Shown here in pieces: positions 4,286-50,050 of a stretch of DNA of 64,000 nt. The position numbers were made by a program, and so were the translations under genes. The notes under the pieces are model-generated. The model saw nothing but the letters and a program-made list of their open reading frames with translations. It had not been told where the DNA came from and did not search any database. Origin of the DNA: Oikopleura dioica (taxonomy: Eukaryota > Animalia > Chordata); NCBI GenBank assembly GCA_907165135.1, contig OU015566.1, positions 5,704,001-5,768,000 of the forward strand, in the 5' to 3' direction. Within the stretch, counting starts at the first letter, position 1. Every line of letters begins with the position of its first letter.

Positions 4286-5287
4286 ATGTTTTCTATAATA
4301 AGAATGAATAAAAATGAAATAAACGCGTTTCTGCGCAGGTATTTGCTGGCAACAGGGCGGCAAAAATCTCTTGATGCACTTGAAGATGACTGGAAAAGGA
4401 CTCAAAAAGGGAATGAACTGAAAAAGGAAGGATTCAAGCTCAGTTTTGAAATTCAAAAGCCTCCAAAAAGAATGTCACTTCTTGAAGATGCGAAGGTGAC
4501 TGAAAGAAAGCGACCGAAAAAAGCAAAAATTGCTTCAGATGATTCGGATGTAAAAGGTTTGATATTATCTAGGAACTTGCGAATAAAAAGGGTTTTAGAG
4601 AAGAAAGTAGAAGTTCCGAAAGAATTCAAGAAGTTGGCTAAAGCTGTTGGTCTCCCAAAAGATCACCTCGAATTCTTCTACGAGTACCGAGAAAGCTTCC
4701 ACTGGGAGGTGAAGAAGGACAACAGTATTTACTGTACTGGGAAATGCGGCAACTGCAAATTCAGCAGCAAAGTCAAGAAAAACTGCCTCGTCGAACACAT
4801 GATCTCTGTCCACAATCACGGCGACTTCAAATGCAAAGAACAAAACTGCAAATATGTTGGATTCTCTCATGGAAATCTTCAGCGGCACACAGCGCAATTC
4901 CACGGGATGGGCAAAGTCGGGTACAAGCTCAATAGAGTGCTTCAGTGCAAGTATTGTGATTACAGCTCGAGTCAGCGGAAAGTTCTCGACGAGCACGTGG
5001 CTGTGCACGAGAATAGGCTCCACCAATGCGAGTTCTGTACTTATAAATGTGCGACGCTGACAAATCTGAAATACCATCTCTTTGCCCACTTCAATATCCG
5101 ACCATTTGAATGTCAAACCTGCTCGGCTACTTTTCCCAGTCAATCCAAACTCGACTTCCACAAGAAGTTTCATTCAAAAGACTTTACGTGTAATCATTGC
5201 CTTGAAACCTATCCTACTCATAACTTGCTCGAAAAACACTTGAAAGTCTGCAGAGTCAGAATTCAAAAATTTAGGGATAGTCGATGA
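4286..5287 (+). CDS. LisH-motif + C2H2 zinc-finger protein, paralog 1
   Basis: N-terminal NKNEINAFLRRYLLATGRQKSLDALEDD fits the LisH pattern. Tandem CxxC...HxxxH fingers with a NIRPFEC linker. Probable 42-nt in-frame intron near 4557-4598. Confidence 0.8.
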   Translation: MFSIIRMNKNEINAFLRRYLLATGRQKSLDALEDDWKRTQKGNELKKEGFKLSFEIQKPPKRMSLLEDAKVTERKRPKKAKIASDDSDVKGLILSRNLRIKRVLEKKVEVPKEFKKLAKAVGLPKDHLEFFYEYRESFHWEVKKDNSIYCTGKCGNCKFSSKVKKNCLVEHMISVHNHGDFKCKEQNCKYVGFSHGNLQRHTAQFHGMGKVGYKLNRVLQCKYCDYSSSQRKVLDEHVAVHENRLHQCEFCTYKCATLTNLKYHLFAHFNIRPFECQTCSATFPSQSKLDFHKKFHSKDFTCNHCLETYPTHNLLEKHLKVCRVRIQKFRDSR

Positions 5288-25010: not shown

Positions 25011-26794
25011 ATGTATGGATCCAAATCGTCGTTGAGTTCCTTTCAGTCGAGCAAATTCGGCGATGACTCGGACGAAGAAGATAATTCTGAAATCAATCGA
25101 CACGGATTCAAGGTCGTTTTCTTCCTTGATTTCAACTTGTAAAAGGGCTTTCATTCAGGTGAAAAATGGCGAAATCGAAGACGGACTACATGTTTCTATC
25201 GAAAAGAACCGAGAGCGCGAGAGCAAGTGGCTACTCATGCTGGCCAATTGGCACTTGTACTCGAAGTCGAAAAAGTATCAGTCGAAACTGAAGAATCGAG
25301 TCCGCAAGGGAATTCCTGATGCTATTCGAGGAAAAGCCTGGATGTTCCTGAGGTACTTCAATTTCACCTTCTCGCTTCTCAACATTTCTAGTGGCGGAGA
25401 AGTCTTAAAAAGAGCATCGCAAGAAGGAAAGCTCCAGGACCAGACGACGTTTCAAATGCTCGACGAAAAGAGCTGCTCAGCGGAAGAAGAAGAGCAAATC
25501 GAAAAAGATCTGCACCGTCAATTCCCCGATCATGAAATGTTCTCGACAAAGGGAAGCGGCAAGCAGGATCTCTACCGGGTTCTCAAAGCGTGGGCAGTCT
25601 ACCGCCCGAATGTCGGCTACTGTCAAGGCCAAGCGCCCATCGCTAGTTTATTATTAATGCATCTGACAGGTAAGCTTATCAATGAACAACCGCGTGCATA
25701 ATTAAAATCATCGACAGCGGAGGACGCCTTCTGGAGTCTTGTGGCTATTTGCGACTATTTCATTCCCGGCTACTACGACGTTGGATTGACAGCTATTCAA
25801 ATGGACGGGCTAATTCTCGAGTCGCTTACGAGCTCATACTGCAGGTTTGTAAAAGGTCGTGTATTCTTTTGAATGATTTATTTGTCCAGCGATGTCCACA
25901 AGCTTCTGAAAGCAACAAAAGTCGAATCGATGTATTATATGACTGACTGGTTCATGTGCATATTTATACGAACGCTTCCCTGGAACACTGTGCTCCGCGT
26001 TTTCGACTTGTTCTTGTCTGAAGGAGTTAAAGTAAGGACATTCTTTTGAACCAAATTTTTATCGATTTTAGGTGCTTTTCCGTGTTGGCTTGACAATGTT
26101 GAGGGAAAACCTATCGACGCTATCGAAAAAACTCAAGAAAAATAACGCAGATGACTTGTTCATGGACGCAATGACTGTAATTAGAAATCATTAAGGAACT
26201 CCAATAAACTCACTTTCGTGTAGTTCGCAAAACGCTCTCCAGAAGCAGCAAAGAACGAGGACAACTTCATTCGCCAAGTTTGCTCCTGTCGAGTAACGGA
26301 ACGAGAGCTGACGAATGAGTTTCAGAGGCAGATGAAAAAATGGGACAGAACGAAAGGAGTACGCTCTTTATTCACTTATTCGAGAATTCATTGCCTTTTA
26401 GGACGTGAGAAGGAATTACTACAAGAGGGATCCCGAAAGCATCAGCGATGTAAAAATGCCATACACAAACGGAAAAATGTCGAAAACGATCAATCCAATC
26501 AGCGCTGATGCTTCAAATGTCACTGCTGCTCGTGAGAATTCAACCATTTTGTCCTCAATATTAACCTTCTTCAAAGAAAGACTAAAGACAGTTCCCGAAG
26601 CTCCCGAAGCACAAGAAGAAGACACGATTTCGCCGACCGACGAGCGCTGGAAAGGCGTCGACAGCAGCAACTACGACCCAAACGCGACGATCAAGCCATT
26701 GCCGCCGCTGAAAACGACTCCGCAGAAAATAGCGAAACCGCCGAGGTCGATTTCCGCGCCTGAGCGATTTCCGGACACTGAGACGAAACTGTGA
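25011..26794 (+). CDS. TBC1D10: Rab-GAP TBC domain protein, TBC1D10 family
   Basis: RESKW, RKGIPDAIRGKAW, IEKDLHRQFP.HEMF, GYCQGQAPIASLLLMH and DWFMCIFIRTLPW. Confidence 0.88.
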
Positions 26795-27324
26795 TCTTGA
26801 TCTCTTTTCCAAAGACTTGTCCCATTCACCGCATAGACCTTATAAATACTTTTTATTACTGTATTTTCTTGCTGACTTGCCATTTGCACCATTTAAGTCG
26901 ACTTTAAATATATTTATCAATCAGAAAACCCCAAGAACGAAAAAAACATCAATCAATTCTTTTTCTCCTTCGCAATTTTAATTCTCCTTTTGACAAAAAT
27001 ATTTTGTCGCTTTTAGATTATTCGCTCTCTTTTAGCAAAATTTTGCCTTTTCGTCAGTTTCAAAAATAATGCTGCTAGACTTAAAATTGATTCGGATCTC
27101 CATATTCTTCAAAATAGTAAAAATCCCATTTCTTATTTTTAGCTTTTTCCCATTTATGTTTCTTTTTTTTCAGTTTGAAATTTCTTCAATTTGAAATTCG
27201 AGTTCAGATTATTTATTTTCTTGATCCTTCATTTGACACTGAAATACATGAAAAAATAATTAAAATAAAAAACATAAATTTATTTTTCTGAAAATATTAA
27301 ATTTCAGAAAATTAAAAAGCAAAA

Positions 27325-29258
27325 ATGCCTTTTGGAGACAACGAGAAACCATTTGTGCATCAATGCCAGGGCGGCTATAATTTAAAAAGCAGACACTTCA
27401 AGTTCTTTCTCAAAGACATTCACTCGACAAGTAAAAAGCAGGCTTTTCTCAGGTCATTTAAAAAATCTCTCAGCGCTAGATCGGATGCCGCAGAACAACA
27501 AGCACGTGGACAACTACGAAAGAACATACAAAGTTCCAGTCATTTGCATGTTCGGCGAAACGCCCGACGATCACTCTGTAATGGTCTTTGTCCACAACTA
27601 CTTTCCCTATTTCTACATTGCAACGAATCCGCATGTGCTCGAAAGAGACATGAACGCAGTCCTCGAGCTTTTGAAAAACGACGCGCGACTCATGCACGGT
27701 TCCAAAAATCGCTTTTCTGAAATCATGAAAGACTCGCTTTTGAACCAGCTAAAAAGAGTACGAGGCGAATTTCTTGGAAAATTGAAGCCATTTTGGCGGA
27801 CTCCGTTTTACGGCTACACTACTGAAAAAAGATTGTACATCAAAATAACCTACACGAAGCCGTACTTGCACGATGCAATAAGAGGAGTGTTGGAGGAAAA
27901 GTTCAAGGTTCAAAATGGATTTTACAATTATGTGAATCAGTTTTACTCAGGCACAGGTTTCTGAGTCATCCTTCTTCAAAAATAGTCCCTAACCTTAACC
28001 CTAACCTTAACCCTAACCCTATTCTTATTCAAATGCAGTAACCTAAAAAGACCACAATGTCGCCTTGAACAAATCCGTTTACCTAAATCGCTTCCGCTAC
28101 GACGAGCGCCCGAAAGCGGAGTTCAACGGGATCGACTTTCTGACCGGCCTCCCCAGAGTGCAGCCAGGCTCGCGCCCGACAAGCTGCGACTACGAGCTGC
28201 ACTGCTCTTCCGACGACATTTTCAACAAAAAGCTTCTCCCGCATTTCGTGGAGCACGTGTACGTGGACCCGCGCTGCGACCATCCAGCTCTGCACATTCA
28301 CTGGCTCAACAGGAAAAATCAAGATCCGGAAAATCCAGTTATTGAGTACGACGACTTCGATTCTGATTCCGAGGCGCTGCTGGAAAGAGATCCGAACAGG
28401 TCACAAATTGACTTGGACGCGAGCCAGATTTTACGGGTCGTGGCGGATCTGGAATCCAGAGGAATTCGAGTCGATATGCAAGCGCTCGCAAAAAAGAACG
28501 AGGAAGAAGGAATCAAGGAAGAGCCCGAAAATGGCGCTAAAGAGTCGCCGAAGAGTCCAAATCCGATTCTTGACGAGCGAAAATCGCCAGAAGTTCTCTT
28601 GAGCTCAGATGAAGAAGGTAATTCTCAACCCTTATTCGCGGCTGGAGAAAATGACCTTCTGAGCCAGTCAATTTACCTCCCCGATTCTGAAAATGAAGAA
28701 GACAAAAAGAAACCAGTTCCTAGCGATTTGGATCGAGAGAGACGAAAGAGCCAATATCCGGAAACAGGGATTGATAGTCTTAGAATCGCGAGTCAGCGGA
28801 AAATAAGCGAGTCTGAAGAAGATGGCTCGATTGCTGAAAACTGGGACTCGGAAGGCGACGATTTCTGGGAAGAAGAACTTGAATCGAACGATTCGGAGAG
28901 GCTTATTGGCGACTTGAGCAAGAAAGACGGCGAAGAGAAGTCCAATGATTCCGTAAAGATTATTGGCGAAGAAAAGAAAGAAGAAGAGGAAGAGACCGGA
29001 CCGAGTTGTTCATTTTCTTCAAGAAGAAAACATTTAAAAATCGTGGAAGAAAAGCCAAAAAGAGCGGCATTTCTGGAATCCTCGGTAAATATCTTCGGAA
29101 TGAGAATTAACACGCGAAAAATTAAGAGCGACGAAGATTCAGCTGAAAGTAATCACTCCGATGATCTTTTTGCGAGAGACTCAGATTCAAGCTCGAAGAA
29201 TTCGTGCGAAGACGATTTCAACGAAAGTTTCGACGAAGAATACTATGAGACGTTATGA
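27325..29258 (+). CDS. REV3L: DNA polymerase zeta catalytic subunit, N-terminal region only (no polymerase domain)
   Basis: KVPVICMFGETP..SVMVFVHNYFPYFY, FYGY..EKRLYIKI, TSCDYELHCSSDDIFNK and HPALHIHWLNRK, followed by an acidic tail, a stop and AATAAA. Confidence 0.72.
27987..28021. repeat. Interstitial telomere-like repeat (CCCTAA/CCTTAA)
   Basis: ccctaaccttaaccctaaccttaaccctaacccta, lying between REV3L exons. Confidence 0.8.
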
Positions 29259-29410
29259 GCTTTGTTTTGCATATTTCACTGCCGAAGTCCAAATTTTTAC
29301 AGGTCAACATTGAATAAATATTTTATTTAAGAAATAAACGCTGTTCAAAATTCTGCTTATAGAATAAATAAATAAATGTAACGAGTAGACCGAAATATGA
29401 AAAGTCGGAA

Positions 29411-32400
29411 TCAAGGCAAATATAAGGGACCAGTAGTGATTGTAGGAAGGTACTCGTCGATTGATCTTCGTTTTCTTCCGCTGGAACAGTCGATGACGCA
29501 ATTTTCAACGCTAGAAGCAAAGTTTGGAAAGAACTCGTCTTGATTGTTACCTTGAGTCACAGACGTTAACATCGCAGTGAAGGAAAAGTGTTGACGCGTC
29601 AAGGAATTTGAAGGAGTTCATTCTGAATCTCGCAAAGTTCTCTTCGCCGTTTTCGAAGATTTCCAAAGTGTCGCCGGCGATTTCGTCATTGTTGCCGCAG
29701 AAGTTGTCGATGAATGAATAGGAGAGTGTATCTTGAGGATTGTCGCTGAAATTCATATTTTTTACGAATAAGAGTGTTCAAGTACGTTGAGGTGGCCCAG
29801 CAGCGGTTGAGTTGAAGTTTGAAATTGTCGCCAGCTGATTCTAGCGCAGTTTTGACGAAGAAAGGCTGCGGGACTGAGATGGTTTCGTTCACCGCGAAAT
29901 GATCGCTTTAATGCTTTTCAAAACGGCTCCATCGCTGATAATAAAAAATAGTTTTGAGAAACATTCCTGAAACCGTCGTCTTTGAATAGGTCAATGCTCA
30001 AGTCGAAGTTGCCGGTCGTTTCGCTCAAGTCCACGGTGAAATGATAGAGCGAGGTCAAAATCGGGCCCGAGTTGACTCGGATCAGTCGCTCGAAAGCGCA
30101 CGCCAAGTCGACTTTCAGCCTTCTTTGGCGAGTGATTCCCGCGTAATTGACGCCGGCGACGCCTTGAATCGAGCTCTTGATGATGATGTGCGTCGCGTTG
30201 GAGACGATTTCGTTTCCGCACTCGGCGACTTTTCCCTGCTGCCCGAAGTGGTACTCGTCGTTGATTAATGTTCCGCTGCAAGCGCTGTTTACTGCTCCGC
30301 CGCTCACTGCATTTGGTCCGCTCAACGAGGCAGCAGATGGATCCATATTCAAATGGTCGAAGACGCATTTGTGGATGGAAATGCCGAAATGATCGGGGCG
30401 GCATTTTGTCGAGGTCTTAGCGGAACAGTTTAAAATTGCGATCGAGAAGGAAATACTTCTTACTTGAAGACTTATGTCACCGGAATCACAAGGAGTGCTT
30501 CCTGCGGATGAAGTAGTTGGTGTTATGCTCGTTGAAGTTGTAGTAGTTGTGGTGTTTGCTAGAAAATTTATTCTGATTCACAAAATTCTTTATTTGCGTG
30601 AATCTTTTTTCCTATCCTGCGCAAAAAGCTCACTGTACCCGGTTTTTTGGAATGCCGAGCGTTTGGACATTTGTTCGATTTTACTCCGATAGATAAATAC
30701 TTGTTTATATAGTTTCGATAGGTTCATTTAATACTTACATGTGGTGGTTGTAGTCGTTGTTGTCGTTGTAGTTGTCGTGGTAGTTGTTGTTGCTAAAAGA
30801 TTGATTCTACGTTACTTTACCCGTTTTTTTTCCTTGAAAAAGAATGCACATAGGCATTTTGATATTTGTTTGATTATAACCAAAGAATAAATTTTATCTT
30901 TATATAATTATAATATTCACTCTCTACTTACGTTCAGGTCGAACAACAAATGTATCTGAGTGTGCTTTCCCGACCAGAACTGTATCTTCTCCTTGATTGT
31001 AGCAGAGGCTGAAGATCAGGGTGACAGCGGAGTGTTCGACCGTCGGCACGATATCGTTGAAAATCGCTCTTCCGCCGATATAGGCAACTTCCAAAGTTCC
31101 AGTGAGGGTTTCGTTTTGGTAAACTGGCGCTTCAACACAAACTCTGCACTCGTCGCCAGCTGGTCCACAGGAGCTCATGTACTCGCCATTTGTGTCGAAG
31201 ATTTGGATGCTTATTTCTGGCAGCGGCTGAAGCACGTAGTTGATTGTGACGTTGTCTGTGTACTCGATCTGTACCGAGCCTAAAGAGGGATTTGGTAAGG
31301 AGATCTTTTTACGCGAGTTTACCGGGTGGAGCAGCGATCACTTCGAAAGGCGCAGAAGTGATTTCAGGCATAGTGAAATTCGACTCAGTGCCGGAATATG
31401 AAAGCTCGGCGGTCAATTGATAAGAGCCGAGAGAGTGAATTCGGAGTCCACTGAAATCAGCAACGCCAGATCCTTAACAAAAAGTAATTTACTTGATATC
31501 TTTACTATTGTTTTACCAGGAGTAAATGCGACTTCTAGTGCGTCGATGTATTCTCCATTCGCTTCGCTAATGAGAACCCTCCATGGATCTCCGCTGTATC
31601 CGACATTTTCCATCTGGGCGCCATCTTTATCAAGCATAACGACCTAAGATTTAGTAATCAATCTATTTTCGACAAGAAAAAAATACCTTGAATCCTTGCT
31701 TGGGACGCTGACTGACGATCATATTGCCTGGTTCTTGAAGAATCGAGAACGTTGTTGGAATTTGATCGTAAACCTTTGCTTCAGTCGTCTTGGACATGAT
31801 TTCTTCTTGAGCCGCCTGTTTATCGATCGTTGTCTCGGAAATAAGGTCTTCTTTGCCAGCTTCGGCCGCTTTAGCTTCCACCATTGCCTGCAAGTTTTCT
31901 GCCTTTCTTCAAGATTGAAAATCATTTGTTGCAAAGATTAACCTCTGAAACATGATTTTTTCTTTTTCAAATCTTTCCTGGTTAGCTTCATCATCCGTAA
32001 TTCCGAGATCCTTGAGAATGGTGACATCCTCGCCCATTGTTCCTGGCTCGTACCAATCAGGGACATCTCCTTCGACAGCTTCGCCCGTCAATGTCGTCGC
32101 AACAACCTCTAACTCGGTTCCCTGCGCATCCGCCATATCCTTGATGCTCGTCTCCAACTCGCCGTCCATTTGCTTCTGAACGAGAATGCTTCCAATTTTG
32201 TCGAAGTCTGGATCACCGACGCTTCTTCGTTTTCTTGAAGAGTTGACGATTCCAAGAGGCTTTCCGAACTCGAATGAAACTTTCATGTTGATGCTGTTCT
32301 TTAATTGAGGCTTTGTCACCATTGTTGCTTCTGTCCAGCTCTTTTGAGCACTTGTCCAGTTTTCTTTCTTGACATCGACGACCTTAACTTGGCTAGGATC

Positions 32401-48832: not shown

Positions 48833-49073
48833 TTGCAGACTTTCGCCTTCAAAGTATAAAATAAAATTATCATTTACAATAAAAGTCTTACATCATTTGT
48901 ATTATAATTTCGATTATTTGTGATCGATAGAAAAATAATTTCTCTAAATATGAAAGCTCTTGATTACCTCATTATTTCGCAAGTAGTTTATCTAATTAAA
49001 CAAAATTTGAAGGATGAAATTCAAGGAACGTCAAAATTTTTATTTTCAAAATATTTCTGTCGAAAAAAGAAAG

Positions 49074-50050
49074 TTACATTCGATGCCGCATAACAGAAGT
49101 TTGTCTGGCAATAATGGACTTGGACATGCTCTGGCGAATACTTTGACTTTGGCGGTAGGAAAGCGGCCCCGTCAGATTCGCAGATTCGCGCAGCTCTTGA
49201 CCAGCGGCGGTGCAGGCGAGAACGCGCAGGGCTTCGTTGTTGGTCGTCAACGGATCGTTCAGAATCTGCATTTCTTCCATGATTCGGCACAGTTTCTCGC
49301 GGATTCGAGTGTATTCCCTAAATTTGTTTTACATTTCCGACCCCTAATTCTAATCTTTACCGCAAGTTTCTTTCCAGAGCGTTGATAATCATGAGTACAT
49401 CCTCGACTCTGTCAATATTCATGTTTCCGAGACCAGTTTTGAAAAGCGGCTTCTGCTTAAGTTTCTGGAAGGCTGGATGATTGGCCATAAAGATAAGGGA
49501 TGCTTCGTCCCCGTCGTCCATTTGGTTGTTGTTTTCTTCCACCTGAGTGGGCTTCTTTTCTTCCTGATCGTCTGTATCTTTCTCTGAAAACGAGTTAGAG
49601 GGTGGCTTTGAAAAAAGAAGGAAACCTGAGTCTCGGATCGCGTCTTGCTCCAGCATCGCGTTGTCCAAGTTTGTCACGACCCGGGCGACGATCATTGAGT
49701 TCATGATGATGCCTAGGTGAGTTTTCAATAGATAATACCTATGGTTTAAAGGGCACTTACTGAAGAGAATGATGAGCAGAATGTTGACAAAGTACCAAAA
49801 GATGAAAATGAGCTCCCGGTCGCCGAGTTCCGTGTCTTTGCCGTAGTCGTAGAAGTCGAAGCCGCTCTGGAAGTTCATTCGCCACCCATCCATCGTCAAA
49901 AACACGAAAGCCGTCCAAATGCCGTCTTGAAAGGTCTTGAAGTGCTCCTGGACGTACTCGCTTTCGACGAACATCTCGCAGCCGAGAGTTACTTGTTTTG
50001 TGGCTCAGAAACAAAATATAACCGAGCTTTTTTATCGTCATGATAAGGAC
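49074..50050 (-). CDS. CatSper-like (CATSPER4-like) channel, S5-pore-S6 and C-terminus only
   Basis: HFKTFQDGIWTAFVFLTMDGW (CatSper-type TxDGW pore), NSMIVARVVTNLDNAM and coiled-coil EDVLMIINALERNL. Confidence 0.7.

Follow-up and report, generated by a model that had tools for sequence, protein, structure and literature searches.

Does Oikopleura dioica encode the catalytic subunit of Pol zeta, REV3, as two separate genes, or has it lost the catalytic half of this enzyme? The question is raised by a locus in the 64-kb stretch of O. dioica DNA analyzed here (hereafter the window, which contains no N), where a first, sequence-only reading had noticed about 600 amino acids of REV3 N-terminal domain (NTD) and acidic tail ending at a stop codon. 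According to work of 2020 and 2026, REV3L of mammals is cleaved into an N fragment and a catalytic fragment, and the enzyme made of both chains is stable and more active; the reason for this separation of the NTD is part of the interest of the present locus. The background given in that reading holds: in human REV3L the site of cleavage by Taspase-1 (TASP1) is D525/G526, and the two products remain bound to each other (PMC7144948). The resulting p70/p300 heterodimer, held by an interface between NTD and EXO, has the higher activity, and the TASP1 site was reportedly acquired in vertebrates (PMC13408197).

The gene, for which we coined the name REV3N, occupies positions 27325-29258 of the window on the plus strand, from an ATG at 27325 to a TGA at 29256-29258, and consists of five exons separated by four GT-AG introns of 43, 66, 94 and 42 nt. 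Under this model the predicted product has 562 aa (65 kDa, pI 4.8). When only the two stop-containing introns are spliced out and introns 2 and 4 are read through, the product has 598 aa, in agreement with the length given by the earlier reading, whose coordinates were also right. Orthologues were gathered from metagenome and Logan contigs, namely L001-L003 (group one) and L005 and L006 (group two), along with further ORF fragments. That of L002 is the sole complete copy among them; its start, intron positions and C-terminal motif agree with those of the window, and the diverged relatives have the introns of the window wherever their contigs cover them.

Exon 1 (27325-27430) contains the start codon and 35 codons plus one base; the ATG and first 40 aa are 64% identical in L002, and the start is also found in the environmental ORF P0004. 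Intron 1 (27431-27473, 43 nt, GT-AG) is required to join the reading frames, and L002 has a 43-nt GT-AG intron at the matching place. Exon 2 (27474-27698) encodes the REV3-type first half of the NTD, with the motifs VPVICMFGET and HNYFPYFY, and exon 3 (27765-27956) encodes the second part of the NTD core, with the motifs PFYGY, LYIKI and QNGFYNYVNQF. Intron 3 (27957-28050, 94 nt, GT-AG) has stops inside. Exon 4 (28051-29084) begins with a remodelled distal part of the NTD, in the order DHNVALNKSVYL, CDYELHCSSDDIFNK and HWLNRKNQ, and continues into an acidic, Ser-rich tail with the basic stretch RRKHLKIVEEKPKRAAFLESS. Exon 5 (29127-29258) ends in the acidic-aromatic C-terminal motif SCEDDFNESFDEEYYETL followed by the TGA, and is 60% identical to its counterpart in L002.

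Introns 2 (27699-27764, 66 nt, GT-AG) and 4 (29085-29126, 42 nt, GT-AG), both on the plus strand like all parts of the gene, are in frame and stop-free, so that they could also be read through; both are probable introns. We count them as introns because the relatives have stop-containing introns at exactly those sites and because splicing them yields gap-free alignments. Relatives carry a stop-containing intron at the codon phase of intron 2, which measures 71 nt in the L002 model, and the region of intron 2 has low pLDDT in the AlphaFold model described below. At intron 4, the ORFs of the relatives break after FLESS and resume at SDE, as in the window. Retention of introns 2 and 4 would add 22 and 14 residues, respectively, with the protein frame unbroken. 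The local genome is very compact, with introns of 40-90 nt and convergent genes 150 bp apart.

Residues 1-270 of REV3N are a REV3-type NTD of B-family polymerases. The Pfam family POL3_N (PF24055) was matched above its cut-off (E 1.3e-7, 32.5 bits against 24.1), and REV3_N (PF24065) was matched below its cut-off by a piece scanned without exon 1 (E 0.0028, 18.2 bits against 29.9). In the read-through model of 598 aa, residues 36-179 scored 79.7 bits with a custom HMM built from 30 REV3 N-termini; this match, like those to the two Pfam families and to Rev3 in the PDB, supports both exon 2 and exon 3. Among 1.84 billion representative proteins, searched exhaustively with an HMM, 77 matched at E <= 1e-3, the top five being larvacean/Oikopleura fragments, with many long proteins among those below. 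Pfam REV3_N was present in 13 of the 14 long matches that were scanned, the remaining one being Pol delta-like, and the named entries that were looked up (n = 6) proved to be Pol zeta, family-B polymerase or hypothetical proteins. With the larvacean NTD profile, 120 residues of yeast Rev3 were matched at E 4e-6, as against 32 residues of human POLD1 at 0.044.

To this sequence evidence we added a structural comparison. AlphaFold (AF2) gave a model with pLDDT 79 and pTM 0.73 from a 39-sequence alignment, and pLDDT 37 from a 5-sequence alignment. When the AF2 model was searched with Foldseek, four yeast Pol zeta (Rev3) chains ranked first (E 2e-5, TM 0.55), ahead of human Pol delta and other B-family NTDs; this support is partly circular, since the alignment behind the model was made of REV3 sequences. 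Rev3 is thus the best PDB match of REV3N by both sequence and structure. We also considered an origin of the NTD from POLD1, which was rejected on the two profile values given above and on the presence of REV3_N in 13 of 14 long matches.

The distal part of the NTD, at the start of exon 4, retains the canonical motif order but is otherwise remodelled, with weak similarity to the REV3 NTD. The canonical YEaHIPYLLQF...DYNLYG segment in particular is remodelled in REV3N and aligns weakly. The distal segment DHNVALNKSVYL is the best-conserved part among larvaceans, yet departs from the REV3 consensus. Across four sequences, exon 4 has 45 invariant columns, and identity to L002 is 57% over its first 108 aa. 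When the distal NTD and tail encoded by exon 4 were searched against the PDB and Pfam, no meaningful match came back. The residue that aligns by hand with K49 of human REV3L is Ser in the window; K49 is an interface residue in the human protein (PMC13408197).

Residues 271-562 form a tail of 292 aa, with 29% Asp plus Glu, 15% Ser and a pI of 4.25. Two features of the tail are conserved, the basic stretch RRKHLKIVEEKPKRAAFLESS and the C-terminal motif SCEDDFNxSFDEEYY. The REV3N protein contains no TASP1-type QLDG site. A simple hydrophobic-x-P-x3-P-type pattern found no REV7-binding-like motif in it, a motif that is short and degenerate; this result fits the binding of REV7 to the C fragment, as in human.

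We then asked what the rest of the window contains. The family-B polymerase motifs A (DxxSLYPS), B and C (YGDTDS) were found in none of the six frames of the 64 kb, and in tblastn, seven full-length REV3 proteins matched the window at 27467-27931 only. Accordingly, the family-B polymerase domain (PF00136) is represented by neither a motif nor a tblastn match across the 64 kb. For the exonuclease-like domain (PF03104) there was no Pfam match in a 401-aa exon piece and no tblastn match in the window. The CysA/CysB domain (PF14260) likewise had no tblastn match in the window, and REV3N ends in the acidic-aromatic motif with no Cys finger. The claim that no PolB or CysA/CysB sequence lies downstream was therefore confirmed for the 64-kb window, by motif scan for PolB and by tblastn for both. 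In a protein word search with the REV3 polymerase domain (P0010 residues 914-1363), the best 120 of 8000 candidates were all fungal. The catalytic half of REV3 is absent from the window and from the fetched loci. The exonuclease-like, polymerase and Cys domains are three defining features of a Pol zeta catalytic subunit, and since REV3N has none of them, annotation as such a subunit would be wrong.

REV3N is a homologue of part of REV3, and in content and size it resembles the N-terminal fragment of mammalian REV3L, called p70 or N70. Both polypeptides consist of the REV3 NTD and part of a disordered spacer, both are of similar size (525 aa and about 70 kDa in human, 562 aa and 65 kDa for REV3N), and both are devoid of exonuclease-like domain, polymerase domain and Cys-finger; p70/N70 also lacks the REV7-binding motifs, and the simple pattern above matched none in REV3N. 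They differ in that the end of REV3N is set by a stop codon in a separate gene, whereas that of p70/N70 is set by proteolysis. In mammals, p70/N70 is a stable polypeptide that binds the EXO of the C fragment. The tail of REV3N is a putative, not a demonstrated, counterpart of the human spacer.

With one-chain REV3, as in yeast Rev3 (PDB 6V8P and 7LXD), REV3N shares the fold and the NTD core motifs VPVIxxFGxT, H..FPYFY, PFYGY and LYxKI. One-chain REV3 has the architecture REV3_N, POL3_N, DNA_pol_B_exo1, DNA_pol_B and zf-C4pol, whereas REV3N is devoid of every domain past the NTD. On the marine protist contigs L007-L009, NTD and polymerase domain lie on one contig. Two-gene family-B polymerases exist in some archaea, as in the split PolB of Methanothermobacter, which offers a precedent for a two-polypeptide B-family enzyme, but one that is split elsewhere in the protein and belongs to another domain of life. 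A cellular PolB of a eukaryote that is divided between NTD and EXO was not described in the literature that we searched, and no report linked Oikopleura to REV3 or Pol zeta, or Pol zeta to gene fission. Both the REV3N gene and a split eukaryotic REV3 are thus undescribed in that literature.

We tentatively favor the possibility that two genes encode the Pol zeta catalytic subunit of Oikopleura, with the break in the spacer behind the NTD. In such a scheme, the ancestral REV3 gene would have broken in the disordered spacer that follows the NTD, and REV3N would act as a detached N-subunit of Pol zeta. Its docking site would be the exonuclease-like domain of a catalytic half encoded by another gene, and the contact would be non-covalent, like that of p70, made by TASP1 in mammals, with p300. 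The basic motif RRKHLKIVEEKPKRAAFLESS in the tail may serve nuclear import. SL trans-splicing and operons occur in O. dioica, and they could have eased the acquisition by the 3′ half of an mRNA 5′ end of its own. If the partner gene exists, a tunicate with a hard-wired, separate N fragment would provide a natural experiment, in which the covalent link would be dispensable over evolutionary time.

Several observations argue for this two-gene arrangement. To our knowledge, the REV3 NTD has a role only within the polymerase itself, where it forms a bridge between the EXO and finger domains. We favor the split because the NTD is known just as a polymerase part, and because in mammals the detached N fragment attaches to EXO and the enzyme is more active as two chains. 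The match in size between REV3N and human N70 lends it further support. Finally, a fragment orphaned by loss of the enzyme should not remain under selection, and the comparison of relatives bears directly on this point. Over 242 NTD codons of L002 and L006, dN/dS was 0.145 (dS 0.6), and over the large exon including the tail, compared between L001 and L003, it was 0.22 (dS 0.27), with the NTD part equal to the tail. Between the window and other lineages synonymous sites are saturated, with dN about 0.3. At least three lineages have retained REV3N as one orthologous gene, and these comparisons show it to be an old gene on which purifying selection acts in several lineages that diverged deeply.

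Other observations weaken the case for a split. Neither the window nor the fetched loci contain the catalytic half that it calls for. The NTD is very diverged, with REV3_N below its cut-off and a remodelled distal segment, and Ser stands at the position of the human interface residue K49. REV3N also evolves much faster than its neighbor gene, and this too weakens the case: in the same two lineages, protein identity is 32-57% for REV3N as against 78-90% for the neighbor.

The alternative that the catalytic half of REV3 was lost is nearly as likely as the split. A gene for the NTD and tail would then have kept a function independent of Pol zeta, either acquired or original, for example as a scaffold or regulator. 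Such a function could act, for instance, via the remodelled NTD surface and the acidic-aromatic C-terminal motif. Loss would be in keeping with the strong remodelling of the NTD, in which the segment most conserved among larvaceans, DHNVALNKSVYL, departs from the REV3 consensus, with the faster evolution of REV3N relative to the adjoining gene and with the lack of any polymerase part within the 64-kb window. We know of no independent function of a REV3 NTD, however, and decay is the expected fate of an orphan fragment, yet NTD and tail have dN/dS values of 0.15-0.22, and the start, the introns and the stop have been retained. The extensive loss of DNA-repair genes for which O. dioica is known, and which extends to the entire c-NHEJ pathway, speaks for loss (PMC12426944; PMC4122922); REV3L, on the other hand, is not listed in the published table of repair genes thought to be absent from Oikopleura (PMC4122922). 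This omission speaks against loss and lends weak support to the split, insofar as the table covered translesion polymerases. If the partner was indeed lost, a REV3 NTD could carry a selectable function of its own, and Pol zeta would be one more DNA-repair activity that this fast-evolving chordate with its scrambled genome lacks.

The two outcomes against which the sequence-only reading had weighed its proposal, a full-length REV3L elsewhere and splicing to distant polymerase exons, are less likely. It is improbable that a full-length REV3L with its own NTD is encoded elsewhere and that REV3N is an old, now autonomous partial duplicate of it. REV3N does spawn partial copies, as shown by the Y-specific region of O. 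dioica OKI2018_I69 (OU015570.1), where L004 9879-10977 contains three rearranged REV3N pieces, 94-99% identical, that match window positions 27604-27933, 28133-28297 and 28290-28393. In the annotation, these pieces make up the 5′ part of CAG5101555.1 (Oidioi.mRNA.OKI2018_I69.YSR.g17205), a chimeric protein of 220 aa that continues into coiled-coil sequence. Intact REV3N was not among the annotated proteins in either protein search. Against a duplicate stands the retention of a single orthologous gene in at least three lineages. In addition, among larvacean/Oikopleura proteins the NTD profile retrieved only the lineages' own copies and the Y fragment, and no second NTD-bearing protein was found in a searched set that included the OKI2018_I69 proteome, a search of limited sensitivity that misses unannotated genes.

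Less probable still is an artefact of the gene model, in which the transcript would skip the stop and splice or trans-splice to distant polymerase exons. The 3′ end is predicted from sequence, which leaves room for such a continuation; three oligo-dT runs and one single-cell run cover nothing in 26500-30000, and since the adjoining genes are equally bare, this says nothing about REV3N. The sequence around the stop speaks against it. On the plus strand there is no AATAAA in 27264-29313, followed by a cluster of five at 29313-29376, within the gap before the convergent gene, where a polyadenylation site is putative. Taken alone this cluster is weak evidence, since the hexamer is common here (93 found against 74 expected). 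The convergent gene, the 3′ end of a fibrocystin-like/ZP gene represented by minus-strand ORFs at 29411-29760, has its stop at 29411-29413, 152 bp past that of REV3N, and bounds REV3N while being separate from it. An AATAAA and a convergent gene about 150 bp later had been described from the first reading, and both are borne out.

In L002, the REV3N stop lies within one codon of that in the window (EEYYQT-stop and EEYYETL-stop), and the C-terminal 40 aa are conserved up to it. A convergent neighbor again follows, about 85 bp past the stop, but it is a homologue of the gene at 49.1-50.0 kb of the window and not of the fibrocystin/ZP gene. A convergent gene is thus present within 85-152 bp in both lineages, a different one each time, and a REV3N end shared by two lineages with different neighbors makes a hidden continuation very unlikely. 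The introns of REV3N, of just 42-94 nt, and the lack of PolB sequence on either strand of the 64 kb also argue against distant exons.

That REV3N is a decaying pseudogene remnant of REV3 is largely refuted. Its sequence is indeed very diverged, and in L002, an environmental haplotype, a MITE-like insert of 125 bp brings a stop into the frame. A consistent set of GT-AG introns nevertheless leaves the frame of REV3N open, several comparisons give dN/dS values well under 1, and start, stop and terminal motif are conserved. Collectively, the conserved start, introns and stop, the different neighbor and the dN/dS of 0.15-0.22 indicate that REV3N is neither a pseudogene nor a truncated gene model. 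The premise of the earlier reading, a complete unit under selection that encodes the REV3 NTD and tail alone, is thereby upheld, its end being conserved in L002 despite a different neighbor. From the genomic comparison, REV3N is best described as an intact, independently terminated gene predicted to encode the REV3 NTD and a 292-aa acidic tail alone.

Some further features of the locus deserve mention. In L002, the convergent gene right next to REV3N corresponds to the gene at 49071-49993 of the window (minus strand), with 78-90% tblastx identity. In the window the two lie about 20 kb apart, with the 15-kb fibrocystin-like/ZP gene in between, and this spacing reflects a local rearrangement or an insertion between the lineages. 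Right after the stop, a short stretch of 3′ UTR, TTTCACTGCC, is common to the window (29268-29284) and L002 (2730-2746), which are deeply diverged lineages. The MITE-like insert of L002 (1585-1712) is palindromic, about 125 bp long and flanked by GTAGCAC direct repeats at its ends; it lies in the large coding exon, introduces the in-frame stop and is missing from L001 and L003. It marks either a new intron that is spliced out or a null allele.

Intron 3 of the window harbors a telomere-like (CCCTAA/CCTTAA)n run of about 50 nt (27984-28037), which the intron of the relatives does not have and which was skipped as a repeat in the placement of RNA reads. The intron after NQF(L/Y)SG has a GT donor in the window and none in L002 (1188-1255) or L006 (about 5196-5250), where it starts with GA or CT. 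Non-canonical introns are known in Oikopleura, and the GT-less donors of L002 and L006 fit this pattern. In our own comparison, four partial RNA reads enter sequence that resembles intron 3 of the L006-type lineage, which suggests that the RNA runs come from another cryptic lineage labelled O. dioica and that these four reads are unspliced.
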